In this document: piece after piece, positions 4,236 to 50,139 of the stretch
Position numbering within the stretch: the first letter of the stretch is position 1
Layout of the letters: every line of letters begins with the position of its first letter
Source: Lytechinus pictus
Taxonomy: Eukaryota
DNA: 64,000 nucleotides
Reading direction: 5' to 3'
Assembly (NCBI RefSeq): GCF_037042905.1
Contig: NC_087247.1
Location: 5,952,001-6,016,000, forward strand
The notes under the pieces: generated by a model
Database searches by the model: none
The model's input: only the letters and a program-made list of their open reading frames with translations
What the model was told of the DNA's origin: nothing
Program-made: the position numbers and the translations under genes

Positions 4236-5728
4236 ATATATATGAATATGTGAATATATAAATATTTAATTATGTAAATATTCCACACACCAGACTCAAC
4301 ATACTCAATCTCCTTGGATGTCAGCTGGCAGCTATTAGTGTCTTCTGTATTTACGTAAGTATATCTAAGTTTCCTTCTTCTTCTTTCCTGTCTCTTTATC
4401 CAACTCACTTTCTGACTTTCTTCTGCGTTCTTACTTTCTATGTTTTTCACTTTTTGTTCACATGAAGAGCCCACAAACTCTTCATATATATATGCATACA
4501 TCCTACGAAAGGGCGAAGTCTATGAATGGGTTTATTCCGTCATAATACACATATAGACGTAAAGACGAAGGTAGAGGGCGTTAAGGCGCATTACGAACAT
4601 TGAAAGAAGACAAAAAAATTTGCTTTAAACACAGATGTAGAGAAATATATATATATATATATATTTATATATACATAAATATATATACATTTATTTATAT
4701 TTACATAATACATATGTGAATACATATGACATCATTATCTGCACCTGCAGATATGCAACTTTGAATTAAAGAAATGAGAATTAAGATACATATTTTTGGG
4801 GTTTGCACTCATCTTATTATAATTTTATTACAATTTATAAAGATATGAATTAAGTTTTGTGCAAAAGGAATATTGGATTTTTTTATAAAAAGAGAAACTA
4901 AATAAGACAAACGATGGAGAGGGGAGCTGGATCGGGGGGGGGGGAGTAGATTGAGAGAGAGAGAGAGGGGGGTAGCATCATATTCATGAACTTAAAATGC
5001 AGTGATACATAACATAAGAGAATGAAGAAGTCTGAAAATGAGTAATATTTATAAAGTAAAATAATTGTCAAAAGATATAAAATATCATGTAAAATGGCGG
5101 CAATATGTTGAAAGGAAATGCAAAACAAAATTAACTTTATACGCGATTGAGTTCTACTTATATTGAATTCCTCTTCTTCAAAATAAATCATTCATGAATA
5201 TAAGAAAGATATATTATGTAAAAATTAAATCAATTCATAAGATTATTCAAAATAAATCATTAAAGCAAAATCAATCGATTATAATCAATCAGCCTCGGGA
5301 ATCAGCCAAATTAATCAATCACTCATGCACTCACCCTGCCAACATATATGACCAATGGCATGCACATTAATAACAAGCTTATTCAATTGAAAGAAAATAG
5401 AAACAGGCCTCCATTTGACCATAATACCAATCCAACAATAATTAGTCAGTCTCAGACTGCGACTGTCGACTGAATAAAATTGATACACATCTGTAATGTA
5501 AATAAAACTCAATAGACAATAAACGTAAACACACACTGAAACGTGAGTGAATGCTTTTTACTCTCTAGGAGCCCGATTCATTGTCATTGATGACATTAGA
5601 CCAAACGTTAGATCTAGTAACGTTACTTACATGGCATCGATTGCGCTAGTAAGTTAGTCTTGAGGACTCCATGATGATGTCTTTTAAAACAAATTTGACA
5701 TATACTTCTGACATATATGTCAAATTTG

Positions 5729-7321
5729 GGCAAAATCGTGATATAGGCCCCGCTCGAGTAAAACTTGTAATCGATCATACCTCAATATATAGGTTGCTAA
5801 CTTCAGCTCACTATATATACTCGTGATATAGGCCCCGCTGCTGTGTTGAATGGCTCAGAATGTCCGTTCGCGGGGCCTGTTTCACGAGTATAATACTATA
5901 ATCGTTATATAGGCCCCGCACTACGGCACTTCAGACACTCCAACACAGTAGCGGGGCCTGTATCACGAGTATATTATTAAGCTTGCATCCTAAGATAATC
6001 GCGAAACTGGCCCCGTAAGCCCCAGGACCACGTTATTTTCCATGATATAACAGTGCAAGGGGCCTCGATAACGAGTATACTAATAGCTAGCCGTCATCCG
6101 AGCCCCACGCACGTGCGAATGCTGGGGAAAAGCGCATTGGACGGGGCCAGTTTCGTGATTATCTTAGGATGCAAACTTAATAATATACTCGTGATACAGG
6201 CCCCGCTACTGTGTTGGAGTGTCTGAAGTGCCGTAGTGCGGGGCCTATATAACGATTATAGTATTATACTCGTGAAACAGGCCCCGCGAACGGACATTCT
6301 GAGCCATTCAACACAGCAGCGGGGCCTATATCACGAGTATATATAGTGAGCTGAAGTTAGCAACCTAGATATTGAGGTATGATCGATTACAATTTTTTTC
6401 TCGAGCGGGGCCTATATCACGAGTATGCCAATAATATACTCGTGATACAGGCCCCGCTACTGTGTTGGAGTGTCTGAAGTGCCGTAGTGCGGGGCCTATA
6501 TAACGATTATAGTATTATACTCGTGAAACAGGCCCCGCGAACGGACATTCTGAGCCATTCAACACAGCAGCGGGGCCTATATCACGAGTATGATGGGGTG
6601 TCCAAACTTCGCGCACTTTTCAAAAATATTCATCAGGCTTAATTTTGTTCACAAAATATTCATAATTTATACAAAAACAATTCAAGAAATAGTTACCACA
6701 TTGACGGCAAGATCGTGAACTATAAAATCATGGACGAAAATGTAAAGTAGGTCAAGGGGTTTCGCCGGTATCGCGATCTCAAAATTCTATTCCGATCGGC
6801 GAATGCGGGCTGTGCTGGAAAACCGTTCAGAAAAGTGTGACCTAACTTCGCGCACCAAATCTTTTGTGGAGATTTAAACAAAAACTCAAGTTCAAAAAGT
6901 GAAAAATTAAATCAGATTGATGGCAAAATGCTATGGAATCGGTTAGTACCACATTTAACTCACATTTTTGATGATTTCTGCTTGCAAAATGGTGATATCG
7001 TGATGCTTGTGATTTCTTCAAAACGGGCGCTAGCGGTGACAAATTTGCCGATCTTTTGCCAATATTTTCATGAATACTGAACTCATCCTAAAAAAAATTT
7101 CATTATACGGTAATTTTAGGTCGCTTTTCACGTTGATGATGTCAGATTTTAAGGATATTGGCTAGTTTTTTAGATAAGGACCGTCCGCGAAGTATGGACA
7201 CGCGCGAAGTTTGGACACACTGCCATATAATAGTGAGCTGAAGTTAGCAACCTAGAATAGATATTGAGGTATGATCGATTACAATTTTTTTCTCGAGCGG
7301 GGCCTATATCACGAGTATGCC
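5729..7321. mobile_element. Non-autonomous Merlin-family element (internal-deletion derivative of 7341-26504)
   Basis: It has the same termini GGCAAAATCGTGATATAGG...CCTATATCACGAGTATGCC and an 8-bp TSD CAAATTTG (5721-5728, 7322-7329). The left arm is fused to the right arm at 6016/6017. The right-end segment is duplicated (6179-6429 and 6430-7321). Confidence 0.9.
6591..7225. mobile_element. MITE nested in the small Merlin element
   Basis: Inverted GTGTCCAAACTTCGCGC near both ends. It interrupts the host motif CACGAGTATATATAGTGAGC, probably at a TA. Confidence 0.8.
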
Positions 7322-7340
7322 CAAATTTGTTTTAAAAGAC

Positions 7341-9394
7341 GGCAAAATCGTGATATAGGCCCCGCTCGAGAAACACTTGTAATCGATCACATACCTCAAT
7401 ATCTAGGTTGCTAACTTCAGCTCACTATATATACTCGTGATATAGGCCCCGCTGCTGTGTTGAATGGCTTAGGATGTCCGTTCGCGGGGCCTGTTTCACG
7501 AGTATAATATTATAACCGTTATATAGGCCCCGCACTACCGCACTTCAGACACTCCAACACAGTAGCGGGGCCTCTATCACGAGTATATATTAAGGCTTGC
7601 ATCCTAAGATAGTCGCGAAACCGGCCCCGTCCAATGCGCTTGTCCCAGCATTCGCACGTGTGTGGGGCTCGGATGACGGCTATTAGTATACTCGTTATCG
7701 AGGCCCCTTGCACTGTTATATCATGGAAAATAGCGTGGTCGTGGGGCTTGTTTCCCCGGTGAGAGATATCATGGGCGGCGCTGTAGGGGGCCGGGGGGGG
7801 GGGGGGGTGGGGGGGGGCTCCAATTTATTTTTCAAATAAACAAGGAGAGAGAATAATAGAATAATAAACATTTATTTGTGGATTTATTTATATATTGATG
7901 TAGTTATTTATTTATCAATCTATTTGAATTGATTAATTGATGATCGTTCGTTTTTATTCTTTTTATAAGTGGAAGTTCATTTATTTATATATTTATCAAT
8001 TTGCCCCTTGCACTGTTATATCATGGAAAATAGCGTGGTCGTGGGGCTTGTTTCCCCGGTGAGAGATATCATGGGCGGCGCTGTAGGGGGCCGGGGGGGG
8101 GGCTCCAATTTATTTTTCAAATAAACAAGGAGAGAGAATAATAGAATAATAAACATTTATTTGTGGATTTATTTATATATTGATGTAGTTATTTATTTAT
8201 CAATCTATTTGAATTGATTAATTGATGATCGTTCGTTTTTATTCTTTTTATAAGTGGAAGTTCATTTATTTATTTATCAATTTATTTTGATTAATTAATA
8301 TATTTATATTCATTCATTATTCGTTCAATTTTTTTGTTTTCATTTTTTTTCTTTTGTGATATAGAGAGTCAGAGGTATCATTCGTTTTTAATTCTTTTTA
8401 TGTGTGAAAGTTCATTTATTTATTCATTTATTTATTATCTATTTAATGATTTAGTTATTATATTTTCAATTTTATTTGTTTGTTATCTGAGTGGCGTGCG
8501 TAGGCCTAGGTCTTATGTTGATACAGGGTCGTACATGTCATTTATTTTTCATTTAGTTTTATTCATTCTGTAAGTTATAGTGGCTATACAAAATGATGAC
8601 GGCAACCATTGTAAAGCTTAGAATATTACTCTTTCATCTGGTATAACTCAGAAGATTCCTCGATCATTCAGGCATGAATGACTTTAACAATTTGAAGAAA
8701 GTATAGATATATAATCTGAATTGAAAAATAATAATTTACCTTTTTTTAATTAGGAAATGAATTAGTCGTAGTTGAATGGTGTTATCATTATTTTCGTTAC
8801 ATAAATGGAATTTATATTATTTTTGTTTAAGGTCATATCCACCCCAGAAAAATGTTGATTTGAATAAATATAGAAAAATCAAACTAGCATAACGCTGGAA
8901 AATTTCATCAAAATCCGATGTAAAATAAGAAAGTTGTGATATTTTAAAGTTCGCTTATTTTTCACAAAACAGTGATATGCACAATCATTTGCATGCAAAT
9001 GATACAGTCGATGATGTCCCTCGCAATTTCTTTTGTTTTTTCTTTTCTTTTTACAGAATTGACAATAAGGGCCCACGTGAATGAACCATATAACAATTCT
9101 AATTTCCGCATGTTCAGGAAAGAATTAATCATTGTTTCACTTTACAACAAGGAGAAAATTGGAAAACACTAAAGAAATAGTGACTGGATGGCGTCATCAG
9201 TTTCCTCATTTGCATACTGACCTGGATGTGCATATATAACTATTATTTTAAATTAAACTAAACTTCAAAATGTCATAACTTTCTTATTTTACATCCGATT
9301 TTGATGGAATGTTTAGCGTTATGATAATTGGATTTTTGTCCTTTTTAGCGTTATGATAATTGGATTTTTCTCTTTTTATTCAAATCAACTTTTT
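7341..9394 (+). repeat. Left long TIR of the giant Merlin element
   Basis: Reverse-complement match to 24046-26504. Contains about 8 TCGTGATATAGGCCCCGC-like motifs in both orientations and an internal duplication (7703-8002 vs 8003-8285). Confidence 0.88.
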
Positions 9395-9417
9395 GTTGGG
9401 GTGGACTTGTCCATTAA
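8827..9417. mobile_element. TTAA-flanked Kolobok-like MITE embedded in the left TIR
   Basis: TTAA-GGTCATATCCACCCC...GGGGTGGACTTGTCCA-TTAA with long imperfect inverted repeats. A mirror copy lies at 24046-24582. Confidence 0.75.
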
Positions 9418-10739
9418 ATTCAACAATTGATGTATTTGTTTTTATTAAATTTTTTGTTTTATTTGATGTTAGGCCAACCATTATCGTTAATTATTTTCTC
9501 TTTTTTNNNNNNNNNNNNNNNNNNNNNNNNNNNNNNNNNNNNNNNNNNNNNNNNNNNNNNNNNNNNNNNNNNNNNNNNNNNNNNNNNNNNNNNNNNNNNN
9601 NNNNNNNNNNNNNNNNNNNNNNNNNNNNNNNNNNNNNNNNNATGCATTACTATTTCAAGTTCTCCGTATTGTTTCACTTATTGATTTCCTGGTTTATTCA
9701 TATATTCATTTATTCGTTCATATTTGCACTGTTTTGGGGGGAAAAATGTGGTGTATTTATTGACACGATATGCCTACCCTTAAAGGGGTAGTTTACCATG
9801 ACGTAGTTGGCGAAAATTAAAGCAGAAACATTAAAAAAATATTCTTAAAGGTTTGATGAAAATACGTCAAGGAATAAAATAATAATAAAATTATTTTTGA
9901 TGACACAGACGAGAATATTTTCCAAAATTTGTGCAGACCTATGATACGTACAAGTAATGAATGTTTATGAGTGCAATGGACAGAATAATTCATGAGGTGA
10001 AAGATGAAATGATCCATTCAGATCCATTCAACGAGGCGTAGCCGAGTTGAATGGATCCTTATTTAATTATAACTATTATAAGTAATTCTGATTGTATAGT
10101 ATTATTTGTTTTAGGAACATTCATTCTTGCATGAGAAACTAGAATCGTCAGAAAATTGGAAAACAATAGTAAAGAAATATTACATTATATTTATCACTTT
10201 TCACAATACGATAAGAGATGTATAGCGTGTCAAGAGTCGCGATTGTGACTTATTTTAGTATTGGTAAATTTTTTTTTTGATTAACAGGACAGCGACCCCT
10301 TTTTTTTTTAATAGCATGCTTCATTTCTTTAGTATTATTCAGGAGCCACAGAAGGGAATGGATATAAATTTTGACAAGTAAAATCAACGAAATTTCAAGC
10401 TGTCCATATTTTTGCGTATTATTATATTATATTGTTTAGTCGATAAGTAATTTCATAGAAAAGACTGGTTCACAAATCATAAAACATAACTGCCCGCCAC
10501 CCTCCTCTCTCGGAGGTCTGAAGAGGATGTGTTAATTTAATTGACTAAACACCCCGTGCCCTACCCGGTTGTCTCGAAAGGGCGTGGCCACTATTTCCGC
10601 GAACGCAGACTGTTTTCTTAAGCCGTTATATCATATTGAAATATATTATATTATATCATATCATATCATATCATATTATATATTTGTTTATGCATAACTT
10701 TGATATTTTTATTCTTATGATAGTTTTATTAGTTTGCTC

Positions 10740-10771
10740 CATAGAGATATATATACTATTATGTCTCTATG
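10740..10771. mobile_element. 32-bp CATAGAGA...TCTCTATG remnant (P-like excision footprint)
   Basis: Inverted ends, flanked by near-identical 8-mers GTTTGCTC and GTTCGCTC. Confidence 0.6.
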
Positions 10772-11104
10772 GTTCGCTCCTTGCTGTAACTTAATTGTAT
10801 TTTAATAGCAGTATATTTGGGCTTTCTCGACCGGGGTAAAATCTTGCCAAATCATAATATTCAACTTCATGATCTATTCCTATGATATTACCAACGGGTT
10901 ATTGTTCTTAATCTTTTTTCTTCTCCCCTACAACTCCTTCTTATTGCTGAAGTTTTTTTTTCTCTTCTTTTTCTTCTTCTCCTACTTCTTCCCCCATGCA
11001 TGCACCTTCACCCTTTTTTCTTATTTTCTTTTTATTCTTCCTCTCCTCCTCTTCTTCTCCATCTTCTGCTTCCCCTCCTTTTCCTTCTCCTTCCTCACCC
11101 TCTT

Positions 11105-12889
11105 CAGCGGTGGATTCAGCTTTCGCCCGAAAAAAAAAGGGGGGGGGGGCGGCGGCGATTTTCTTTTCCAGCTGACATATTTTTCCAAAAAGTCGCTCAA
11201 AGTTATACTAATGAAAAACAACATGATATAATCTCATAAGCTCTATTTCCAAAATGCGAGCGCGAAGCGCGAGCAAATTTTGTTGAAAATTTCTTGTATT
11301 TTGTCCCGAAAATTGAATACTAATATTCTGGGTAATGTTCGTGATTCTGAACAAGATGCTATATAACTAGAAAATAACTGCGAGCGCGATTACGTTCTGG
11401 CCTGATGGAAAAGGGACCTGTTACTGAGGACTGTTTGCAGTTAGCCATGAAGACGATACATATTTTTTAAGTTAAAAAATGCGAGCGCGAACTTAAAAAT
11501 TAAAACATTCCGACCTTAAAAAAGTGGACATTCTTTGCACTTTTTTTTGTACATTTTTGTTTGGGTATATAAGTAAACAATTGATGCAAGGGAGAAATTT
11601 TAGATATCGAGACCTAAAAAACGGGAAACGCTATTCTTGTTTTTAAATCATGAAAGGATGGATAATTGGGTATCTTCCTACATCAATAATGCGAGCACGG
11701 AGCACAAAGCGCGAGCATAAAATTTTTGAAAATCTAAATCTGAAACTACTAATTTAAGTATGATTTGAATAAAGAACGAGCTGTGTATCTCATTTAACCT
11801 GCGTCTGCGTGTTTTTATACCTATAATCTTGGCATTCTGAATACATTTATTAATCACGAAAATCACTAATGCGAGCGCGAGGTGAAAATATTTGATATTC
11901 CAATCTGAAAAGGGTCAATTTAAGCACTATGTAGGGAAATTTTGATGTGGATCGCACTTAATAAAGGATGCAAGTGCGACCTATAATATTTTTATTACTA
12001 TTTTGACCGAGGATCGGGACATTCTAAAGACATAAATTGTCATCATGTGAAAATGATGACTATCTTCCTTTCTCTCGACCTAAGCGCGAGATAAAACTGG
12101 TTGATATTCATTTCTAAAAATGGGGACAATTTTGTTATTAGGAATTAATGAAAATGTTTTCTTATCAATCTCATTTGTCCTAGTGAGATCGTGAAAATTA
12201 TTTATATTAAGACCTAAAAACTGCACATTTTAAGCATTTGTGTAGTTATGAATAGGATGCATGTGCTAATATATTTCGAAGAATTAATGCGAATCGCGAG
12301 CCGAAATATTTGATATTAAAACCGTCATGAAAATTGTATTTTTTGTAGTTTGTTATAGAATTAATATAGAGGTATAACTCACCAATCAAAATGCAAGCGC
12401 GCAGCGCTAGCTGATATTATTGTACGTGATATTGATATTATACGTTCTGACTATCACACATGAACAGGGATATTTTGAGAGTTTTGTGGAATATACGAAA
12501 ATAATAGGTACTTGCCAAATTAATAATACGAGCGCGCAGCGCGTGCTGAAAATCTTGATATTCAGACCATAATACGGACATTCTTGTACAAAAGACTTAT
12601 AACAATCGATTTGTAACTCAAAGCGTGAAAAATTAAGCTCCATATCAACATATTGAGCAAGATATGTATCTATCGAACAGGCAATCCGAGCTCAAAGCGC
12701 GAGCGAAAATTTTGTATGGTGACATGAAATATTTTTTTCCAAATCTTCCTGTCACCTTATTTTATTCACTCGTCAACCTCCTCTTATTCTTCCTTTTTTC
12801 CTCTTCTCTTTCCCTTTTTTCTTTAATTCCCCTTTTTTGCGGTTTTTGCTCCGCCAATAGGGAGCCAGGGGCCCCTGGATGCGCCTATG
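11105..12889. mobile_element. 1.8-kb non-autonomous TIR element with degenerate GCGAGCGCGAAGCGCGAG internal repeats
   Basis: Ends CAGCGGTGGATTCAG / CTGGATGCGCCTATG, with a 5-bp direct repeat CTCTT on both sides. It splits a CT-rich tract (10900-11104, 12890-13080). Confidence 0.65.
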
Positions 12890-13417
12890 CTCTTCTATTG
12901 TCTCTTCTTCTCCTTCTTCTGATTCTTCTTCCTATCCTTCTTCCTTATCCTCTTCTGCCTCTTCATTTTCTTCTTCGTCTTTTTCTGCTTCTTCTTATCC
13001 TTCTCTTTCTTCTTCTGCTTCTTTTTCTTATCCTTCTTCTTCTCGCCCCTTTCCTTCTCCTTTCTCAACTTCTTCAACAAAAACAAGTGAGGGAGAGAGT
13101 GTGTGTGATCAAGAGAGAGGGAGAGAAAATGTAATGAGAAATGAATCGAAAAGAATATGACAGCGACGACCCTGGCCGCTCGCACCAAAATGAGAACCGA
13201 GCTACCGGATCTCAAACATCCTTCTTCGCCCATTTAAATATCCCTCTCCCTTTAAGAGTTTCTTGAGAAAATTAGATGGAAAGTGGATTGCGTTAATGAA
13301 AGAAGAGTGTATTTTGCAGCTCTTGATTTTGTTTATATGTTAGGTGCTGCTATTAAAACATTTTTTAATAACAAATTGGTATCTTAAAGGTCGCAAATAA
13401 TAAGATCATCCCCCTTC

Positions 13418-16266
13418 AAACCTGGAGATCTCAAACAGAGCGATTAGTGGATTGTTTATTTATATTATATTCATATCTTTACAATATCTTGTATTTATAC
13501 AGTAAGGTTTATAAGTCAATAGTCCAGTCTATCATTCTTATTATATTTGGGGGACTATTTCTGGTGATTCCTCTCAATATTTAATCAATCGTGAATTATC
13601 ACTTCACTGTTCATTAATATTTTCGGGGGGGGGGGGGGGTTACGGCCACTGTTTCTCATGTTGAGGGATTCATTTCCTTACTTTTTATTAGGGGTGCATA
13701 GAGGTTTATCCCTGTCTTTATATTTTTATTATTTATTTATATTCTTTTATTAGAACAAATTGTCAATTATATATTTTATTTGAAAATCGCATCTGTTGAT
13801 ACTTTTTTTTTTTAGTTTAAAAATCAATTGCTTAACCATAATAATTCATTGACGAAAATAGTGCTTTTTATTAGGGGTGTTTTGAGGTTTATCCCTGTCT
13901 TTATATTTTCATTATTAATTTTTTTTCTTTTATTAGAACAAATTGCCAATTATGTATTTTATTTGAAAATCGCATCTGTTGATACTGTATTTTTTCTGTG
14001 TTAAAAATCAATTGCCTAACCATAATTATTCATTGACGAAAATAGTGCAGGGTGTTTTTCAATTTGTTTAAGAGGGAAATAGAGACATATCTATTCAGTT
14101 TCTTTCTTGGTAATTTGGTGGCTCTGAAAAGAGCCGTTGTGTTTAGAGGCGAGATTAAATCTCAAGCCAAAATGACTCATGAGAGTCATTCGAAGTCGCT
14201 GTCGTCGCCTTCGCCCCAGGTGAAGGCGCTCCTTGAGTAGTTGTTTGCCGTGGCTGGTTGACGGCTGCTTGGACCGGCACCCTCCTCTTCACCTCCGCTT
14301 CCTTCCTTCCTAATCTCGATGTAGTCAGCTGGGCAGATGACCCTCCTCGCTGGCATCTTTTTCCGCTTCCTCGGCATGTTGGATGTCATGTCGGGCCTGT
14401 TCGTCGGCGTGGAGGTAGCTGCAGGGACGTCGTCGACTTCCTGGTCACCGTCGTCATCGTCGTCCTCATCGTCACTCATTCTCGAGAGCGACATGTCTGC
14501 CAAGTCTGCCTTTTCACCTGTCCACGTGTCAAAGAGAGGCGATTCGGCGTCGAGGAGGTTGGCCGTAGTCAGGGGGTAGAATCGGCGCATCAGGGCAAAG
14601 AAGGCGTCGAAGATGTTTTGCCCGGAAGTGTGGTTGCGCCAGATGACTTCGGCGAGATGCGCCTCGAAATTGCTCATGGTGGTCCCGTTGATCCGTCTGA
14701 AGTGATCCTTGGCATGCTTCCAGGCGCCCTCGATGCGGTTGGTACACACCTCCTTGATCACCCCCGTAGTCGCATGTCGGTAGCGGGCTTTGAACGTCTC
14801 TTTATGAATGACGTTGAAATGCTCGTAGCCGAGATCGTTCAGTGAGGCGTAGCCAGCCCAGCCGTCGGTCAGGATTGTCGACCCCACCTCGACGTGGCGG
14901 GTAATGATGTGGACCAGTGTGTCTTCCTTCCTATCCTCTACGGGGTAGAGAATGATTTTGTTCGTCGACCTCTCCACCATGCCGACGATCCACACCTTCA
15001 TGCCGACGTTTGGGTTGCCTTTATGGTATTTGCAACGTCTGCCGAACAGTGACTCATCTATCTCGACTTCACCAGACAGCTTCATGGGGGCGTCAGGGCT
15101 GTAGACCTCGGACACATATTGTCGAAACAGATCCCTTATGTAGTTGGCCCAGTCGACCGCCGTCTTCTTGTAGTCCAGTCCCGCCTGGGTAGCCATACAT
15201 CGGAGGGAGTTCTTCAGGAGAAAATCACGGATAAACTCCATGATGTCCTGGAAGCTGAAGTGGCTTCTCCTGAAGAATGAATTCTCCGTGATTGAGAACT
15301 CCACATCCTTGTGGACGTCGTTCTTACGGCAACGCCACCGGAACCCATGATGTTTGCCTTTGCGCTGAACCAGACGGCAGTCTCTCTGGCATCGGGGGCA
15401 CACCTTCTTCTCGCAGAGCAGCCCTTGCCCCATCATCCACTCCACCACATCTCTTGGAGGACTAAGAAACAGGCTATAGAAACTCCAAGGATTGTAAAAA
15501 TGGGAAACCCTGCATGTTGAAGGATCGACGCGCTTACGAAAGTTGCCAGCCATCTTGAAGGATACTGATGGTCAACCTCAAATTTTCACACAATTTATAC
15601 CTTTTTGGAGGACCGTATGCCTCCATCTTGTGAAACGTGTGATTGGACCCCTACTTTCCCCCCCTTTTCTGCCAGCGAAATCGACAATATGCAAATCTCG
15701 TCCGTGTGACGGTATTATGCAAATCAGGCCCGCATGTACCTGATTTAATTATTCATGACTGATACAAACATACACGGTGCGAATACAGGTGGTTCATGAC
15801 ATATGAAGCTCATAATTGACTGCTATCTTCTATTTCATCCATTTATCAAGTCATCCACTAACCACAACGACTGTTGGGATTGCAACATCAACAGATTTAA
15901 CCCGAAAATTAGTTCAAAATAAGAGACATGCCGTCCGTAGGCCTATAGGCTATATATGGACAGGTAATCTTTATGCACATTAATTGAGCCAATCGAGGGA
16001 GTAGAGGCTAGCTGCCAAACGTGGGATAGGTTAGCCCGGCCCTGAAGAAGCGATTTGCATTTTGCGCCTTCTACCCGGGTCGATGTCCCATTGGCTGATA
16101 AAATTAGTGCCTTCATCTCATGAGCACCTTGTGTATCATTACATAATGTGTGTTACCCGAAGCAGGGAAGACTTCCCTGCCCGAAGGTTGTCAACCAGGG
16201 AGATCCCCCTCGCCCGAATCAAACACACTGCCCAGCGCTGTGTAGTCTATATTCTGCAGACACTTT
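13418..16266 (-). repeat. Left arm of the central palindrome
   Basis: Reverse complement of 16635-20096. Paired ORF coordinates sum to 32883. Confidence 0.95.
14186..15553 (-). CDS. Merlin (IS1595/ISXO2-like DDE) transposase, copy 1
   Basis: 455 aa, intronless. N-terminal Cys cluster CPRC...WRC, then GEVEIDESLFG, KYHKG, WIVGMVER, GSTILTDGWAGY, EHFNVIH and TNRIEGAW (D-D-E). Acidic tail and NLS-like PRKRKK. Confidence 0.93.
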   Translation of the reverse strand: MAGNFRKRVDPSTCRVSHFYNPWSFYSLFLSPPRDVVEWMMGQGLLCEKKVCPRCQRDCRLVQRKGKHHGFRWRCRKNDVHKDVEFSITENSFFRRSHFSFQDIMEFIRDFLLKNSLRCMATQAGLDYKKTAVDWANYIRDLFRQYVSEVYSPDAPMKLSGEVEIDESLFGRRCKYHKGNPNVGMKVWIVGMVERSTNKIILYPVEDRKEDTLVHIITRHVEVGSTILTDGWAGYASLNDLGYEHFNVIHKETFKARYRHATTGVIKEVCTNRIEGAWKHAKDHFRRINGTTMSNFEAHLAEVIWRNHTSGQNIFDAFFALMRRFYPLTTANLLDAESPLFDTWTGEKADLADMSLSRMSDDEDDDDDGDQEVDDVPAATSTPTNRPDMTSNMPRKRKKMPARRVICPADYIEIRKEGSGGEEEGAGPSSRQPATANNYSRSAFTWGEGDDSDFE

Positions 16267-16602
16267 TTCTTCTGGATATCACTCATAAATAGGCACGTGA
16301 TGCTACTTCAGTATGCTCTGTNNNNNNNNNNNNNNNNNNNNNNNNNNNNNNNNNNNNNNNNNNNNNNNNNNNNNNNNNNNNNNNNNNNNNNNNNNNNNNN
16401 NNNNNNNNNNNNNNNNNNNNNNNNNNNNNNNNNNNNNNNNNNNNNNNNNNNNNNNNNNNNNNNATCATTACCTAGTAAATTGTTCCTCATCTTGGAAAGA
16501 AGCTAATGCTAATTCATATATGTGGATATATACTGAATTATAGGGCAGCATCCTTATGATCAGGTGCGTATTTAGGGGTGATTTTCAGAAGAAAATGCCA
16601 AA

Positions 16603-16635
<33 letters not shown>

Positions 16636-17119
16636 AAGTGTCTGCAGAATATAGACTACATCGTCACAGCGCTGGGCAGTGTGTTTGATTCGGGCGAGGG
16701 GGATCTCCCTGGTTGACAACCTTCGGGTAACACACATTATGTAATGATACACAAGGTGCTCATGAGATGAAGGCACTAATTTTATCAGCCAATGGGACAT
16801 CGACCCGGGTAGAAGGCGCAAAATGCAAATCGCTTCTTCAGGGCCGGGCTAACCTATCCCACGTTTGGCAGCTAGCCTCTACTCCCTCGATTGGCTCAAT
16901 TAATGTGCATAAAGATTACCTGTCCATATATAGCCTATAGGCCTACGGACGGCATGTCTCTTATTTTGAACTAATTTTCGGGTTAAATCTGTTGATGTTG
17001 CAATCCCAACAGTCGTTGTGGTTAGTGGATGACTTGATAAATGGATGAAATAGAAGATAGCAGTCAATTATGAGCTTCATATGTCATGAACCACCTGTAT
17101 TCGCACCGTGTATGTTTGT

Positions 17120-17332
17120 ATCAGTCATGAATAATTAAATCAGGTACATGCGGGCCTGATTTGCATAATACCGTCACACGGACGAGATTTGCATATTGTC
17201 GATTTCGCTGGCAGAAAAGGGGGGGAAAGTAGGGGTCCAATCACACGTTTCACAAGATGGAGGCATACGGTCCTCCAAAAAGGTATAAATTGTGTGAAAA
17301 TTTGAGGTTGACCATCAGTATCCTTCAAGATG
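17120..17332 (+). promoter_or_regulatory. Putative transposase promoter (mirrored at 15551-15763)
   Basis: Octamers ATTTGCAT at 17159 and 17187, CCAAT at 17237, TATAAAT at 17284, Inr-like TCAGT at 17315, and YY1-like CAAGATGG at 17253 and over the ATG. Confidence 0.6.
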
Positions 17333-18697
17333 GCTGGCAACTTTCGTAAGCGCGTCGATCCTTCAACATGCAGGGTTTCCCATTTTTACAATCCTTGGAG
17401 TTTCTATAGCCTGTTTCTTAGTCCTCCAAGAGATGTGGTGGAGTGGATGATGGGGCAAGGGCTGCTCTGCGAGAAGAAGGTGTGCCCCCGATGCCAGAGA
17501 GACTGCCGTCTGGTTCAGCGCAAAGGCAAACATCATGGGTTCCGGTGGCGTTGCCGTAAGAACGACGTCCACAAGGATGTGGAGTTCTCAATCACGGAGA
17601 ATTCATTCTTCAGGAGAAGCCACTTCAGCTTCCAGGACATCATGGAGTTTATCCGTGATTTTCTCCTGAAGAACTCCCTCCGATGTATGGCTACCCAGGC
17701 GGGACTGGACTACAAGAAGACGGCGGTCGACTGGGCCAACTACATAAGGGATCTGTTTCGACAATATGTGTCCGAGGTCTACAGCCCTGACGCCCCCATG
17801 AAGCTGTCTGGTGAAGTCGAGATAGATGAGTCACTGTTCGGCAGACGTTGCAAATACCATAAAGGCAACCCAAACGTCGGCATGAAGGTGTGGATCGTCG
17901 GCATGGTGGAGAGGTCGACGAACAAAATCATTCTCTACCCCGTAGAGGATAGGAAGGAAGACACACTGGTCCACATCATTACCCGCCACGTCGAGGTGGG
18001 GTCGACAATCCTGACCGACGGCTGGGCTGGCTACGCCTCACTGAACGATCTCGGCTACGAGCATTTCAACGTCATTCATAAAGAGACGTTCAAAGCCCGC
18101 TACCGACATGCGACTACGGGGGTGATCAAGGAGGTGTGTACCAACCGCATCGAGGGCGCCTGGAAGCATGCCAAGGATCACTTCAGACGGATCAACGGGA
18201 CCACCATGAGCAATTTCGAGGCGCATCTCGCCGAAGTCATCTGGCGCAACCACACTTCCGGGCAAAACATCTTCGACGCCTTCTTTGCCCTGATGCGCCG
18301 ATTCTACCCCCTGACTACGGCCAACCTCCTCGACGCCGAATCGCCTCTCTTTGACACGTGGACAGGTGAAAAGGCAGACTTGGCAGACATGTCGCTCTCG
18401 AGAATGAGTGACGATGAGGACGACGATGACGACGGTGACCAGGAAGTCGACGACGTCCCTGCAGCTACCTCCACGCCGACGAACAGGCCCGACATGACAT
18501 CCAACATGCCGAGGAAGCGGAAAAAGATGCCAGCGAGGAGGGTCATCTGCCCAGCTGACTACATCGAGATTAGGAAGGAAGGAAGCGGAGGTGAAGAGGA
18601 GGGTGCCGGTCCAAGCAGCCGTCAACCAGCCACGGCAAACAACTACTCAAGGAGCGCCTTCACCTGGGGCGAAGGCGACGACAGCGACTTCGAATGA
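17330..18697 (+). CDS. Merlin (IS1595/ISXO2-like DDE) transposase, copy 2
   Basis: Protein identical to 14186-15553 in the ORF track, with the same DDE motifs. Confidence 0.93.
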   Translation: MAGNFRKRVDPSTCRVSHFYNPWSFYSLFLSPPRDVVEWMMGQGLLCEKKVCPRCQRDCRLVQRKGKHHGFRWRCRKNDVHKDVEFSITENSFFRRSHFSFQDIMEFIRDFLLKNSLRCMATQAGLDYKKTAVDWANYIRDLFRQYVSEVYSPDAPMKLSGEVEIDESLFGRRCKYHKGNPNVGMKVWIVGMVERSTNKIILYPVEDRKEDTLVHIITRHVEVGSTILTDGWAGYASLNDLGYEHFNVIHKETFKARYRHATTGVIKEVCTNRIEGAWKHAKDHFRRINGTTMSNFEAHLAEVIWRNHTSGQNIFDAFFALMRRFYPLTTANLLDAESPLFDTWTGEKADLADMSLSRMSDDEDDDDDGDQEVDDVPAATSTPTNRPDMTSNMPRKRKKMPARRVICPADYIEIRKEGSGGEEEGAGPSSRQPATANNYSRSAFTWGEGDDSDFE

Positions 18698-19423
18698 CTC
18701 TCATGAGTCATTTTGGCTTGAGATTTAATCTCGCCTCTAAACACAACGGCTCTTTTCAGAGCCACCAAATTACCAAGAAAGAAACTGAATAGATATGTCT
18801 CTATTTCCCTCTTAAACAAATTGAAAAACACCCTGCACTATTTTCGTCAATGAATAATTATGGTTAGGCAATTGATTTTTAACACAGAAAAAATACAGTA
18901 TCAACAGATGCGATTTTCAAATAAAATACATAATTGGCAATTTGTTCTAATAAAAGAAAAAAAATTAATAATGAAAATATAAAGACAGGGATAAACCTCA
19001 AAACACCCCTAATAAAAAGCACTATTTTCGTCAATGAATTATTATGGTTAAGCAATTGATTTTTAAACTAGAAAAAAAAATAGTATCAACAGATGCGATT
19101 TTCAAATAAAATATATAATTGACAATTTGTTCTAATAAAAGAATATAAATAAATAATAAAAATATAAAGACAGGGATAAACCTCTATGCACCCCTAATAA
19201 AAAGTAAGGAAATGAATCCCTCAACATGAGAAACAGTGGCCGTAATCCCCCCCCCCCCCCACCCGAAAATATTAATGAACAGTGAAGTGATAATTCACGA
19301 TTGATTAAATATTGAGAGAAATCACCCGAAATAGTCCCCCAAATATAATAAGAATGACAGACTGGACTTAGAAAGTGGATAATGGAAAGAATCTCGTATA
19401 AACATATTGACTAATAAACCTTT

Positions 19424-20024
19424 GGCTGAAAATAGTATGATTTATATGCCTACAAATAAAGAAAATCAGATAAACAAAACACTGAACATTTGATCAAAAT
19501 CGGACAAGGAATAACAAAGTTATGGCATTTTGAAAATTTGCATTATTCCGATGAAACAATTATGGGTATGTCATCATGAATATTCAATGATTATGAGCAA
19601 ATTGGTGATGTCATATCCCTACTTGTTCTTCTGTATTATGAAAATTAGGTTGATTCAAAAAAATTTCTACGAAGAACTTAAAACATTGGATTGACAACTG
19701 ATTTAGTGCATTAGATATTCATTGCTGCAACTTATTTCATTATAAAGGAGACACATTATTCACACATATATTATGAAAAAATGAAACAATGATTTCGTGT
19801 AATAACATAAGAAAAAGGAAAGTGGGGATGTGACATCATCAGCCCACCTAATGAATATTCATGATGACGTACGTATAATCATTTTCACAAAATATTGCTT
19901 TACTAAAAATTCAATAACTTTTTTATCTGTAATACGATTTTGATGAATTTTTCAGCATTTTGCTATATGAATTTTACTCTATTTATTCACATATAAATAT
20001 TTTCAACCGGGAGTATCCTTTTAA
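19424..20024. mobile_element. Kolobok-like MITE (left end truncated), present in the right inner arm only
   Basis: Same family as 42560-43152 (GGCTGAAAAT..., GTGGGGATGTGACATCATCAGCCCACC). Ends GGAGTATCCTT-TTAA. Absent from the left arm at about 13500. Confidence 0.75.
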
Positions 20025-22573
20025 TGTATAAATACAAGAGATATGGAAATATATATAAACAATTCACCAATCGCTCCGTTTTAAATCTCCAGGTTTTCGG
20101 GGAGGGGGTTGATGCGACAGCCCCATGAAATCTTGAAATGTAATCTTTTTCCTTTTTTTTTTTCAATTTTTCTAAACAAAACCCACAGCACCCCCTACTT
20201 AAAAATCGTTCCCAGTGCCCTGCTTGATCGTTTATCGAACATGATTTGCATGGATATTTGTATTAATTTCTTTGTATTTGAGATTTACATAATTCTTGGT
20301 AGATAATCAGATCATGCTTCATAACTTTTTGGTTTGTATAATAATATTTCTTGAAGACGAAATGATGGGATTGTTGGGTTTAAGTGACATTTGTTACCTT
20401 GTATGGTATATATCAGTTTCGTCTAATAGTTTCTGGTACTTTCTGGAGGGTAACCCCCAATTACCTTTATTTGATTAGAATTATATTTAGGACATCCATC
20501 CAAAATGATATTGCTTGGTCATGTTTGAGTCATCTGTAAATATATATATTTTACATTGATTTATATGTAGTTTGATTACCACTAACATAGTATCCTGTTG
20601 CTAGGCGAAATCCAACAATTCTACAGGCGCTGTTGGTCATGCAGTTACATCATACTAGTTGGCAGTGACGTCACGAATCATGGCACACGCCACAGAAGTC
20701 ATGAATAATTAATGAGGAGTGATCGATCCGGGAAGTCAGCAATTCAGTTTTATTGTCTAAGGATTAACCCTGTTCACACTGAAACAACGTCTTATTTAGT
20801 TTTAGTTACACTTTATTTGGGAAGTACTAGGGTCTATTCATACTATAAAGTCTTAATCTAATTTAATTTTTAATCTGATTTAAATGTATTCCGTATACTT
20901 GCATCTTAAGTTAGATCATTTTTTTGGTAATTCATTATTATCCCAGGATATTGTTTTATAATTTTCCATCTAGATAATACTTAATCAATTTGTCAATTTA
21001 TTTAAACGTATAAGTCAACAATTAACTCAAATTATACAAATTTGTCACTATACACAGTTTTGAAGTCTCTCCAATCATCTGAATTTTATTTGCCCGATGA
21101 CTTAAACTGCAATCTCTTATACTACTTTTCTCCACATTACTTTCCATTAATACTCATCAGCGTGATTTCATTAATCTTGATCAATACGTTTGAGTGTTTT
21201 CCATGTTATATACAGTATTGACTTCAATATTGTATTTGCATACCCATGATACCATGTACATGTATGATTTATATATGCCTTTGTTTTTTCACTTTCCATT
21301 ACATCCCTCTTCTTTCATAGTACTCTCCCTACACCTTCAACTCCTTTTCCTGTCTATACATGCCTATACCACCCCCACTTATTTTGCATTGGGGGGGGGG
21401 GGGGGACAAAGCAAAAAAGAGGCTTATGTCGAAAGTGATGGGCATTTTGGTGCAAACGGATTTTTCATCTCGAGATTATTCTGCGTGAAGTGAAGTATGT
21501 GTGTTTTGTAGTATAATGAAGTTGAGCAAAGCCATTTTAAAGTGATTCTGATTGAAAAGATATGTAATAAGGCTCATCCGCGAGCGAGCGGGGCAGCGGT
21601 TTTGAAATAAATTCAAATCTGAGGTTGTAAAACTCGCTTTTTTGGCCTATTATATAGAGCACTATCTGTTAAAAGGGCATCCTTGCGAGACGTTGCAAGG
21701 GCGAAACGCAAGCTCAAACTTTGTTGTCACGCATTTTGGTTAAGAAGTTCGATATTCTCTAATCATATATTTCCATTCTCATACTTAAATTAGTCAAAAG
21801 GTATTCTGCTCATTTATGCAACGAATGTCCAGTTAAGATCAATTGTGAATGTCACTTTCACTTGCCCAGTAACCTGCACAATCAAAGTACTAAATGGGTA
21901 ATTTGTTTTTCTGTTCCAATCATGAAGAAGCGAAAACGGAAATCAGCCCCTTAGTTTGTTTTTTTCAAAACACAAAAACGAAATCACAACGAGAAAAACT
22001 TGTTGAACAAGATGCCCCCCCCCCCCTCTCTCTCTCACTCCTACATGTCAGCAGCTAGTGCTTAAATCATACCCTTATTGTCTCGATATATAATTTTATT
22101 ATCAACAAAATTCATCTCGAACTTCGATCGCATTCGCATCCTATTTGCAAGTGTGAAAAATTCAGCTCGTGCTCCTCTTTCATATCCTGGTCATGCGTCA
22201 CTGTAAAGTCCTTTTCATATTTTCAGTTCAGTAATTAGAATATTAAATAAACTTTTATTGTTTAGGGTTACAAAGAGAGCTTAGTGTGCTCCATTCATAG
22301 CTCGTAACACATGTATTATAAAAAAAAAACAGTTAGCGTTCTCGTTTAGTTCGTCCGTATAGGCATGGTAGGCCTATCTTGTTGGTAAAAATTAAAGTAC
22401 AATGTACATAAACTTCCATCCTAAGGTTATCACAACCCCCCCCCCCCCAAAAAAAAAAAAAAAAAAAAAAAAAACACCTCTTCCTCTTTGAGTGGCCGAC
22501 CAGGGATTTCATGAAAAGCAATGTGTCCAACCGGCCTGTACCCCCGCCCAGCCCCTTTAAAAGTACTGGACCT

Positions 22574-22746
22574 GGTGGGTGTTTCATAAAGCTGTTCGTA
22601 AGTTAAGAGCTACTTTAAGAACGACTGGTGATCCTTTCTTGTGGTAAATGGCATATTCATTGGCGATGGTTTGGCACATAAGAAAGGTTCACCAGTCGTT
22701 CTTAAAGTTGCTCTTAACTTACGAACAGCTTTATGAAACGGCACCC
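22574..22746. mobile_element. Short Harbinger-like MITE
   Basis: Inverted GTTTCATAAAGCTGTTCGTAAGTTAAGAGC arms. Confidence 0.75.
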
Positions 22747-23829
22747 CGTACCTATGTGTATATTTTTTTCCTGACGCATTCAACCAGACAGACCTATGCG
22801 CCACCAACTGTCTTCTCAAATTTGTGCAGCCCCCCCCTCCCCCTCCCCCGCTACGAAATCTCGGATCTATAAGGGGACACATTAAACTCCTGAAATAAAA
22901 TATCACAGAAAAGGAAAAAGTATAATAATTCGTGCATGATAATAAATCATAAGAACACATTGAGACACTTTTTCAGAAATTATTAAATCTTTTAATGAAA
23001 ACGGGATATCGGGGCGAGGGTGTATGAATTAGAAAATAATTGAACACCATAATAGGCGAAGAAAAAAATGCAATATTTGGATGGTGATTTAAGAAATATT
23101 AAGTTAATTATGGAGTATAGATATCCCTCAAGCCATAATGAAATTGACCAAAAGAAAATTCATAAACCTTCCCCGAATGAATATGCCTATTCGTTTTCTT
23201 TTCTGAACTTAAATGGATGAAAAGTGAGGAAGGGGGGGGGGGGGCATTATTGAAGGAATGAAAAAAAAAATTGATAATACTCAAGAAGCCTGATGAATGA
23301 TTCAATATTGAATAAGAGAAGAAAATCGATTTGATGATTTGTGATTGCAAATAGATGGATGATACATGAAGGAATAAATGGATTCATTCGCAGCATTACG
23401 TCAAGTGAAAGATTGACAAGAAGTCAAGAACTACATAATTTAATTATTAATGACACCTCCCTGCAAAAAAAAATAATCAAAATAAAATGCTGAATAAAAC
23501 GAGGTTATCAAATAACAAGCAAATATAAATTACGATGGATAATGGAACAAAAATATATATAAATGCCTAACGTTACATAGAAAACACTCCCCGAAAATAG
23601 CAAATGAATGAATCATTCACAGATTTATCAAAAGTTATTCAGAAAGCAGATCATTAAAGCAAAATATTAAAAACACGAGGGCGGCATCAGGTTGCGAGGG
23701 GCCAGGTTGATTTTTCTCTGAAAACTGAAGGATAACATGCCTAAAACAAAGTCGCTCACTCATAATATGGATCCTACCTCCATTGTCATGCAGAGTTTTT
23801 ATTCTCACTTCTTTATTATCCCCGTTGTT

Positions 23830-24045
23830 TTTTGGAAAATAAATTGGAGCCCCCCCCCCCCCCCGGCCCCCTACAGTGCCGCGCATGATATCTCTCACTG
23901 GGGAAACAAGCCCCACGACCATGTTATTTTCCATGATATAATAGTGTAAGGGGCCTCGATAACGATTATAATTGCCGTCATCCGACCGAGCCCCACACAC
24001 GTGCGAATGCTGGGACAAGCGCATTGGACGGGACCAATTTCGCGA
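23830..24045 (-). repeat. Extra internal fragment of the Merlin TIR
   Basis: Similar to 26030-26233 and the reverse complement of about 7612-7830. Directly abuts the truncated MITE copy at 24046. Confidence 0.85.
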
Positions 24046-26504
24046 CAAAAAGTTGATTTGAATAAAAAGAGAAAAATCAAACTATCGTAACGCTAAAAAT
24101 TCCATCAAAATCCGATGTAAAATAAGAAAGTTATGACATTTTGAAGTTTAGTTTGATTTAAAATAATAGTTATATATGCACATCCAGGTCAGTATGCAAA
24201 TGAGGAAACTGATGACGCCATCCAGTCACTATTTCTTTAGTATTTTCCAATTTTCTCCTCATTGTCAAGTGAAACAATAATTAATTCCTCCCTGAACATG
24301 TGGAAATTAGAATTGTTATATGGTTCATTCACGTGGGCCCTTATTGTCAATTCTGTAAAAAGGAAAGAAAAAACAAAGAAATTGCGAGGGACATCATCAA
24401 CTGTATCATTTGCATGCAAATGGGTTGTGCATATCACTGTTTTGTGAAAAATAAGCGAAACTTTAAAATATCACAACTTTCTTATTTTACATCGGGTTTT
24501 GATGAAATTTCCAGTGTTATGCTAGTTTGATTTTTCTATATTTATTCAAATCAACATTTTTCTGGGGTGGATATGACCTTAAACAAAAATAATATAAATT
24601 CCTTTTATGTAACGAAAATAATGATAACACCATTCAACTACGACTAATTCGTTTCCTAATTAAAAAAAGGTAAATGATTATTTTTCAATTCAGATTATAT
24701 ATCTGTACTTTCTTCAAATTGTTAAAGTCATTCATGCCTGAATGATCGAGGAATCTTCTGAGTTATACCAGATGAAAGAGTAGATATTCTAAGCTTTACA
24801 GTGATTGCCGTCATCATTTTGTATAGCCACTATAACTTACAGAATGAATAAAACTAAATGAAAACTAAATGAAATGTACGACCCTGTATCAACATAAGAC
24901 CTAAGCCTACGCACACCTCTCAGAATTGTAACAAACAAATACAATTGAAAATATAATAACTAAATAAATAAAAAGATAATAAATAAATGAATAAATAAAT
25001 GGACTTCCACACATAAAAAGAATTAAAAACGAATGATACCTCTGACTCTCTATATCACAAAAGAAAAAAGAACTGAAAACAAATGAAATAAATGAATGAA
25101 TAAATCAATCAATTGAAATAGATTGATAAATAAATTAAATGAACTTCCACATATAAAAAAGAATAAAAAACGAATGATACCTCTGACTCTCTATATCACA
25201 AAAGAATAAAAAAACTGAAAACAAATAAATAGAATGAATAAATATGAATACATTAATTAATCAATTGAAATAGATTGATAAATAAATAAATGAACTTCCA
25301 CTCATAAAAAGAATAAAAAACGAATGATACCTCTGACTCTGAAAACAAATGAAATAAATGAATGAATAAATCAATCAATTAAAATAGATTGATAAATAAA
25401 TTAAATGAACTTCCACATATAAAAAAGAATAAAAAACGAATGATACCTCTGACTCTCTATATCACAAAAGAATAAAAAAACTGAAAACAAATAAATAGAA
25501 TGAATAAATATGAATACATTAATTAATCAATTGAAATAGATTGATAAATAAATAAATGAACTTCCACTCATAAAAAGAATAAAAAACGAATGATACCTCT
25601 GACTCTCTATATCACAAAAGAAAAAAAGAACTGAAAACAAATGAAATAAATGAATGAATAAATCAATCAATTGAAATAGATTGATAAATAAATTAAATGA
25701 ACTTCCACTCATAAAAAGAATAAAAAACGAATGATACCTCTGATTTTCTATATCACAAAAGAAAACAAATTGAAAACAAATAAATTTAATGAATAATGAA
25801 TAAATATATATTAATTAATCAATTGAAATAGATTGATGAATAAATAAATGAACTTCCACTCATAAAAAAATAAAAAAACAAATGATACTCGACTCTCTAA
25901 ATGACAAAAGAAAATTAAACGATTAATGAATAAATTTAAATACATCAATTAATCAATTCAAATATATTGATAAATAAATAACGGCCTAAATAACTATATC
26001 AATATATAAAAACGGCAAATAAATTTAAAAAATAAATTGGAGCCCCCCCCCCCCCTCCCCTACAGCGCCGCCCATGATATCTCTCACCGGGGAAACAAGC
26101 CCCACGACCACGCTATTTTCCATGATATAACAGTGCAAGGGGCCTCGATAACGAGTATACTAATAGCCGTCATCCGAGCCCCACACACGTGCGAATGCTG
26201 GGACAAGCGCGTTGGACGGGGCCGATTTCGCGACTATCTTAGGATGCAACCTTAATATATACTCGTGATATAGGCCCCGCTACTGTGTTGGAGTGTCTGA
26301 AGTGCGGTAGTGCGGGGCCTATATAACGGTTATAGTATTATACTCGTGAAACAGGCCCCGCGAACGGACATTCTAAGCCATTCAACACAGCAGCGGGGCC
26401 TATATCACGAGTATATATAGTGAGCTGAAGTTAGCAACCTAGATATTGAGGTATGTGATCGATTACAATTTTTTCTCGAGCGGGGCCTATATCACGAGTA
26501 TGCC
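24046..26504 (-). repeat. Right long TIR of the giant Merlin element
   Basis: Mirror of 7341-9394, longer because of an expanded AT-rich array. Confidence 0.88.
24990..25960. repeat. AT-rich tandem array, about 7 units of 115-151 bp, inside the right TIR
   Basis: ACTTCCAC...GAATGATACCTCTGACTCT recurs at about 25003, 25143, 25294, 25409, 25560, 25701 and 25852. Confidence 0.85.
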
Positions 26505-49452: not shown

Positions 49453-50139
49453 ATGTGTTTGATTTACATGTAGTTCTTTATCTAAACTGATTAAATCAGT
49501 GATGTTATTGAACTTATTGTAAAACTTGGTTTTGTCTTGTTCTTTTTTGTTCTCTAAAAAAAATCTTGTAGACTACTTTTAATTTAAAGTCATGGGCCGC
49601 TTTTCACCATTTTATGATGGCAACATCAGGCCCACAGAACAATCTTTAAAAAAAAAAAAAAAAAAAAAACTTTTTGAAAAAATTGATTTTAGATGGACCT
49701 ACTTCAACTTTTTTTAGGAAGTGGAACAACTATATAGGGTCTAAAAACTTTTAGGAAGTGAAACAGTAAGGTTTATACAATAAAAAATATATATCACTAG
49801 GTAGGCCTGTACCAATAATGTGTTGGGGTTTTTTTTATTCAAGTATTAAAATCTTTGATTATCCACTTTCTTAGGTTTATCTTTAGGGGAAGAAATAAGT
49901 TGACCATTTATTATTACCCCCTAGTTGTACATGTATATCACAGTGAGGATGAAGAGGANNNNNNNNNNNNNNNNNNNNNNNNNNNNNNNNNNNNNNNNNN
50001 NNNNNNNNNNNNNNNNNNNNNNNNNNNNNNNNNNNNNNNNNNNNNNNNNNNNNNNNNNNNNNNNNNNNNNNNNNNNNNNNNNNNNNNNNNNNNNNNNNNN
50101 NNNNNNNNNNNNNNNNNNNNNNNNNNNNNNNNNNNNGTT

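Follow-up and report, generated by a model that had tools for sequence, protein, structure and literature searches.

How can two copies of a transposase gene, facing in opposite directions within an old palindrome, be identical even at synonymous sites when the DNA at the edges of the same palindrome has clearly diverged? This question is raised by a stretch of 64,000 nucleotides from the sea urchin Lytechinus pictus (assembly GCF_037042905.1, contig NC_087247.1, positions 5,952,001 to 6,016,000; hereafter the window, in whose coordinates all unlabeled positions are given). The window contains an inverted duplication which forms the coding core of a 19.2-kb Merlin-type DNA transposon. We consider it likely, with a probability of roughly 0.68, that the interior of this old palindrome was homogenised by arm-to-arm gene conversion which was stopped by heterologies between the arms. 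In what follows, uniqueness and copy counts refer to the whole genome, that is, to a search of the 812-Mb assembly.

Based on an inverted-repeat scan and pairwise alignments, the left arm (minus strand) was placed at 13405–16321 and the right arm (plus strand) at 16464–20113. Along the window, the left arm comprises the 3′ region, the transposase gene, the promoter, and a diverged inner edge. The right arm comprises a diverged inner edge, the promoter, the transposase gene, the 3′ region, a miniature inverted-repeat transposable element (MITE), and a diverged outer edge. This inverted duplication was found at no other place in the genome. The symmetry centre lies at approximately 16432, within a run of N (16322–16463) which interrupts neither gene. 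A first-pass annotation, made from the letters of the window, had recognized the inverted repeat itself but limited it to 13418–20096; its ends are instead near 13405 and 20113, outside of which we found no homology clearly above that of shuffled sequences (score 23.5 versus a shuffle maximum of 22.5; 57% identity). The same annotation had regarded the central 370 bp or so as a spacer distinct from the arms. This view had to be given up, because 16267–16321 still aligns to 16540–16597 with approximately 70–80% identity (score 28 versus a shuffle maximum of 14.5).

Each arm contains one intact open reading frame (ORF) of 455 amino acids, located at 14186–15553 on the minus strand and at 17330–18697 on the plus strand, and the two encoded proteins are identical. 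Both contain the transposase domain DDE_Tnp_IS1595 (PF12762; E-value = 7e-23, 81.8 bits, cut-off 27). The residues D166, D230, and E275 are invariant among 11 homologs, and an N-terminal cluster of cysteines is also conserved. In total, 150 homologs were detected, nearly all of which have PF12762; they come from sea urchins and bivalves and are of the Merlin type, and the best of them reaches only 52–61% identity. The enclosing element is thus a Merlin/IS1595-like DNA transposon. The exact 455-residue protein is not on record in public assemblies, and no third copy of the gene with more than 76% DNA identity is present in the genome, which leaves the two arms only. The closer relatives in this genome are broken relics, and intact Merlin-type ORFs elsewhere in it are more distant (44–47% identity). 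One decayed relative (L051, G000:C13:8939372-8943866) consists of tandem, scrambled transposase fragments with stop codons and at most 83% amino acid identity. Another relic, on C8, matches a locus of Lytechinus variegatus with 87% identity over 4.2 kb. We also considered whether a palindromic gene pair is a trait of the family, and rejected this idea, as the relatives in L. variegatus and D. antillarum are single genes.

To describe how the arms differ, we counted differing positions among aligned sites in left-arm coordinates. The outermost part, 13405–13505 (aligned to 20015–20113), differs at 10 of 89 sites and has indels in addition, and 13521–13570 differs at 3 of 50. No difference was found at the 232 sites of 13571–13802. 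Segment 13803–16162, which is the reverse complement of 16721–19080 with a constant coordinate sum of 32883, differs at one of 2360 sites, the lone mismatch being the edge of a poly-T run near 13810. Again, none of the 80 sites of 16163–16266 differs, so that the arms are identical inward of two indels as well, up to 16266 and 16635. Then, at 16267–16321 (aligned to 16540–16597), 10 of 51 sites differ. The arms are therefore homogenised between 13571 and 16266 in the left arm and between 16635 and 19318 in the right arm, a zone of approximately 2.7 kb with zero substitutions. Its only differences are indels of 1–3 bp linked to homopolymers (in 13571–13813, at poly-G and poly-T runs only) plus 24 bp extra in the left arm (16163–16186) and 6 bp extra in the right arm (16660–16665, from the alignment). 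Divergence between the arms is 6% beside the MITE, 12% beyond it, and approximately 20% at the inner edge, and the contrast with zero substitutions in approximately 2.7 kb is far beyond chance. Several descriptions given by the first-pass annotation, namely the identical proteins, the constant mirror offset, the indels at the inner edge, and an outer edge with substitutions, indels, and a MITE in the right arm only, all held when they were examined by alignment and, for the MITE, by a family search. A separate feature within this zone is a tandem duplication of 184 bp downstream of the gene (13681–14048, mirrored at 18835–19204), whose units are approximately 90% alike and which is the same in both arms.

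Could purifying selection alone have kept the two genes identical? The family is under constraint. Compared with the variants found in another individual (X1, see below), 23 of the 39 listed ORF differences are synonymous and 16 are non-synonymous, and 23 of the 39 fall at third codon positions. Judging from these substitutions, the transposase gene is under purifying selection. Selection on the protein, on the other hand, cannot explain the identity of the arms, because the identity extends to the promoter (710 bp) and to the non-coding DNA 3′ of the gene (610 bp), approximately 1.3 kb within the homogenised zone, and the two genes show zero synonymous differences. This explanation is refuted and retains virtually no probability. 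Judged by the edges, with Kimura two-parameter distances (K2P) of 0.06–0.23, the arms are far more alike, in their non-coding DNA as well, than neutral evolution since the duplication would lead one to expect.

The ends of the homogenised zone deserve closer inspection. The left outer edge (13405–13520, partner 20015–20113) has a K2P of 0.12 plus indels, and the left inner edge (16267–16321, partner 16540–16597) has a K2P of 0.23. Both are unique, and no further occurrence of the edge sequences or of the promoter was found by the genome search. The identity jumps exactly at two places. The outer one is the MITE junction (13521/19368), where a block present only in the right arm begins (19369 to approximately 20020). 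It contains the MITE itself at 19424–20008, at the outer end of the high-identity zone, a member of a family with 7149 candidate copies of 82–87% identity. The inner place is a TG/TA microsatellite of the right arm only (16598–16635), at the inner end of the identical zone (16266/16635). This coincidence of the zone's ends with insertions in one arm suggests that heterology may act as a barrier to conversion. The MITE has a K2P of 0.11 to a nine-copy consensus, which is at least as large as the outer-edge divergence per arm (0.06) and is compatible with divergence that started after the insertion. Although the edges have drifted 6–11% per arm, the transposase ORF is intact.

These edges also bear on a second explanation, in which the 2.7-kb core was inverted and duplicated de novo very recently, by fold-back or template switching, and the similarity of the edges came from elsewhere. 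A young core would readily have zero substitutions, and the 24 bp extra at 16163–16186, in which a 7-bp direct repeat (CCCGAAG) surrounds a perfect hairpin of 17 nt, looks like a footprint of break repair or excision and hints at break repair in this region. In-register homology, however, continues beyond both ends of the identical zone at 77–94%, and edges found at no other locus must go back to one and the same older duplication. Moreover, fold-back gives identity from the centre outward, whereas here the edge closest to the centre is the most diverged. We regard a recent duplication as quite unlikely. That the palindrome is an older inverted duplication, as proposed by the first-pass annotation, was borne out by the interior being far more alike than the edges and by the uniqueness of the edges.

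The position of the palindrome within a transposon raises a third explanation, that two independent insertions of one active transposon in opposite orientations are identical because they are young, with flanks that are related target repeats. In its favor, the transposase is intact and the family is mobile. To evaluate it, the termini have to be considered. The autonomous Merlin-type element spans 7341–26504 (19.2 kb) and has terminal inverted repeats (TIRs) with 5′-GG termini, flanked at 7341 and 26504 by an 8-bp target-site duplication (TSD), TAAAAGAC. Its inverted ends, 7341–7805 and 26043–26504, are 97% identical. GG termini and 8-bp TSDs were seen in all four family copies examined, and the window element and the three others all run from GGCA to TGCC. 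The TSDs of L048 and L049 are exact over 8 bp, and that of L050 agrees at 7 of 8 positions. Within the palindrome and its arms, in contrast, TIRs, GG termini, and a TSD of their own were looked for and none was found, and the identical zone lacks TIRs and TSDs as well; the actual TIRs and TSD are located 6 kb farther outward in both directions. Independent insertions are excluded by these arms without termini, by the lack of a third copy in the genome, and by edges that occur nowhere else and are thus not a repeat family. We consider this explanation very improbable.

The element family has at least 156 candidate copies, including copies of approximately 7.2 kb which lack window positions 9865–21723 and share one junction with approximately 10 bp of filler. 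For this internal block of 11.9 kb, TIRs or a TSD of its own were looked for and none was found. That foreign DNA had inserted here into a “host” element of 7.2 kb was considered and dropped, as the block has neither termini nor a duplication. The window copy is better read as an autonomous 19.2-kb element, with the 7.2-kb copies as its probable deletion derivatives. This transposase may act on these termini, judging from their co-location only, and other intact Merlin-type ORFs (the 44–47% relatives mentioned above) exist elsewhere in the genome. Some further features of the element and its surroundings were noted. A 0.55-kb segment (20130–20685) is inverted and displaced relative to three of the 7.2-kb copies, where it lies between segments matching 21724–22005 and 22003 onwards. 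Just left of the element, at 5655–7340, there are more pieces of the termini of this Merlin family, nested in one another. Within the internal block, 11220–12890 matches an old and very abundant family of repeats with more than 10,000 candidates at approximately 70% identity, and the repeat-matching part overlaps the start of a 156-residue ORF (12664–13134).

The fourth explanation is an assembly artefact: The arms may really differ by a few per cent and have been made identical by consensus or polishing, or they may have been joined wrongly across the N run. The first-pass annotation had itself raised a collapsed repeat or an inverted haplotig as a caveat. One part of this caveat stands, as the N run occupies the exact centre and no spanning read or molecule was obtained. 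In addition, the substitutions and non-homopolymer indels are all within approximately 100 bp of a unique junction, a pattern which a phasing-limited consensus would give. The other part is weakened by several observations. Both the left piece (9642–16321) and the right piece (from 16464) are collinear with the halves of three other element copies, in the right order and orientation. Because of this collinearity inside one transposon copy and its intact, matching 8-bp TSD, it is unlikely that the two pieces beside the N run are wrongly oriented or do not belong together. Collapse of a 2.7-kb repeat with unique flanks is unlikely too, since the assembly keeps apart tandem 7.46-kb histone gene repeats that are 99.4–99.9% identical. 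It would still need an interior identity of at least approximately 95%, versus 77–88% at the edges; the heterogeneity between interior and edge would survive, and only the figure of 100% would fall.

The N runs themselves are informative in this respect. The window has four, of 135–178 bases (9507–9641, 16322–16463, 49959–50136, and 56595–56736), whereas approximately 88 kb of other sampled loci of the same genome contain none. When the right inner edge was used as a query, short TA-microsatellite matches appeared at genome coordinates within the central N run; because matches are reported inside it, the N runs are probably masked stretches rather than true gaps. Together with the separated repeats, this pattern resembles that of an assembly from long reads in which some stretches were masked. 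On balance, we give the artefact a small but real chance.

Data from other individuals were also examined. X1 and X4 are whole-genome contig runs of other individuals, and X21 and X22 are raw RNA reads of the poly(A) type; no run contains more than 15% of the window's words. ORF pieces in X1 and X4 are 95–96% identical to the window, the X1 ORF differing from it by 4–5%. In X1 there are never more than two variants per place, with depths in a ratio of 1:2 (43.9 versus 88.1; 38.6 versus 80), and these variants are unphased. They are weakly consistent with arms that are alike within a haplotype and different between haplotypes. The depths would fit one haplotype with two identical arms and one with a single different copy. 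One X1 contig (depth 41.5) lacks 16778–16998, a deletion of 221 bp that removes a distal CCAAT/octamer/TATA cluster, and is unlike the window upstream of 16753. This deletion and the 1:2 depths may reflect a copy-number or structural polymorphism of the palindrome. No piece bridging an arm edge was present among the X1 and X4 contigs.

Taken together, an old duplication with later homogenisation is favored because selection, independent insertions, and a fresh fold-back are each contradicted by the evidence. Such a history may be reconstructed as follows. An old inverted duplication would have produced a head-to-head pair of complete transposase genes flanking a TA-rich centre. Each gene has a promoter of its own, an intact DDE ORF, and a 3′ end of the histone type (described below). 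The interior 2.7 kb would then have been homogenised by one or more arm-to-arm conversion events, either through intramolecular recombinational repair or through template switching between the arms during the repair of a gap left by excision. The tracts would end where homology breaks, outside at the MITE of the right arm and inside at the microsatellite and the indels, and the DNA beyond these barriers would have drifted to 12–23% divergence. A weak hint at more than one event, with differing end points, comes from the 6% divergence of the short segment from the MITE junction to 13570. The anatomy of the locus, its identity profile, the unique edges, and the position within a transposon are direct results, and from them we infer conversion as the process, heterology as the barrier to its tracts, and any benefit to the transposase. 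The proposal of the first-pass annotation that conversion keeps the core identical is partly supported, by the identity pattern, the identity of non-coding DNA, and the ends bounded by insertions. Its further suggestion, that identity serves to give the transposase a repair template, may describe a possible consequence and is speculation.

Several points weigh against conversion. The N run at the centre applies here as well: The continuity of the arms rests on indirect evidence, no read or molecule among the X1 and X4 contigs and the RNA reads spans both, and polishing could have erased a few true differences between them. The diverged edges are short (approximately 100 bp and 55 bp), and ages estimated from them are rough. 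No signal of GC-biased conversion was found, as the converted non-coding DNA has 30% GC, like the flanks, and the high GC content at third codon positions is common to the single-copy L. variegatus relative. One recent conversion and recurrent conversion would both fit the pattern.

The second subject of this locus is the regulation of the transposase gene, whose histone-type signals, like the surrounding 19.2-kb element, are absent from the first-pass annotation of the palindrome. On the right arm, a histone 3′ untranslated region (UTR) stem-loop with a downstream element, CAAGAAAGA, is located at 18743–18787 (plus strand), starting 46 nt after the stop codon, and its mirror copy is at 14096–14140 (minus strand). 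Both match Rfam family RF00032 (40.1 bits, gathering threshold 34, E-value = 3e-9), and the hairpin has a folding energy of −9.3 kcal/mol (z = −3.25). CAAGAAAGA lies 8 nt downstream of the stem-loop, and the gene is intronless. The histone genes of the same genome are arranged in 7.46-kb tandem repeats encoding H1, H4, H2B, H3, and H2A on one strand, a layout which we take to be that of the sea-urchin early histone genes. The Merlin 3′ element is 95% identical over 44 bp to that of H1 and keeps every position which is invariant among the five histone genes; C-A-x-G-A-A-A-G-A is invariant in these five genes and the window Merlin. The downstream element reads CACGAAAGA in H3 and H2A and CAAGAAAGA in all three Merlin genes.

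The other two of these Merlin genes are the L. variegatus relative, with a match at L068:9322-9366 (plus strand, 35.0 bits), and the C8 relic of the same genome, with a match at L053:3033-3077 (minus strand, 35.9 bits). Both matches are to RF00032 and lie directly after the stop codon, and both loci belong to a subfamily which is only 56–66% identical in protein to the window Merlin. No RF00032 match at the gathering threshold was found in the Diadema copy or in three non-echinoid contigs. Upstream, the proximal promoter (17159–17290, plus strand; mirrored at approximately 15593–15724, minus strand) contains two ATTTGCAT octamers, a CCAAT box, and TATAAAT approximately 45 bp before the ATG. 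The H2B promoter of this genome and the DNA upstream of the L. variegatus relative likewise have octamer, CCAAT, and TATAAA blocks, a resemblance at the level of motifs only: Between the Merlin promoter and the histone repeat no similarity was found at the sequence level, short motifs alone being shared.

From these signals we infer that this Merlin lineage may be expressed like a replication-dependent histone gene. A broader scenario is that an echinoid Merlin lineage adopted histone regulation (an H2B-like promoter, the stem-loop, and a U7-binding element), that the transposase would be made as a non-polyadenylated message of S phase or the cleavage embryo, and that one autonomous copy would in addition keep two genes error-free by arm conversion. 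We offer this scenario tentatively and regard it, as a whole, as possible but doubtful. If true, the transposase would be made when transposition is most heritable and most replicative. None of the RNA reads in X21 and X22 mapped to the gene, the only matches being poly-G/C tracts, and poly(A)-selected libraries would miss a non-polyadenylated mRNA. A search of a paper library found no paper on a transposase gene with histone 3′-end signals. The histone-type 3′ end may matter more than the palindrome, as two species of sea urchin and two subfamilies of Merlin have conserved it behind the stop codon. It leads to a testable idea, that a cut-and-paste transposon could use the histone mRNA machinery of its host to have transposase made at the time of DNA replication or of early cleavage.

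How does this locus compare with known systems? The ampliconic palindromes of human and primate Y chromosomes have large inverted arms which are homogenised by arm-to-arm gene conversion. As assembled, the window palindrome resembles them in its inverted arms, its short spacer, the genes within the arms, and an arm identity far above surrounding or allelic divergence. In contrast to theirs of tens of kilobases to megabases, its arms are approximately 3 kb each, it lies in a mobile element rather than on a sex chromosome, its identity zone is bounded on both sides by diverged arms, and conversion is here a probable reading. A literature search on transposase palindromes with conversion returned nothing relevant. 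The bacterial composite transposons Tn5 and Tn10 contain inverted insertion sequence (IS) copies at their outer ends, each a complete mobile element. They share with the window element the presence of two inverted transposase gene copies in one mobile unit, whereas here the genes face each other at the centre without termini of their own and the mobile ends are 6 kb further out.

In its transposase and termini the element is a Merlin transposon. This superfamily of DNA transposons in eukaryotes has bacterial relatives in IS1016/IS1595 (Feschotte 2004, summarised in PMC8101967), and the elements in that description possess a single transposase gene and TIRs of 24–462 bp (PMC8101967). The window element agrees with the superfamily in its DDE_Tnp_IS1595 domain with a D-D-E triad, its N-terminal Cys cluster, its 5′-GG termini and 8-bp TSDs, and the existence of internally deleted, non-autonomous copies. 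Compared with the elements described in PMC8101967, it differs in its length of 19.2 kb, in having two divergent, identical transposase genes in a 6.7-kb palindrome, and in their histone-type 3′ ends.

The latter ends recall replication-dependent histone genes, whose stem-loop (RF00032) is bound by SLBP and whose downstream element is bound by the U7 small nuclear ribonucleoprotein. The Merlin gene is likewise intronless, has a canonical stem-loop and CAAGAAAGA, and carries octamer, CCAAT, and TATA motifs as H2B does; it differs in that its product is a transposase. The palindrome is a combination of known kinds, a Merlin element and a conversion-homogenised palindrome, and the histone-type signals are the newest lead. 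Arm-to-arm conversion is well known for sex-chromosome palindromes, and here the same signature is found within a transposon, at the only genes that work in it. Should the signature be real, it would show how an autonomous transposon present in a single copy could withstand decay by mutation.

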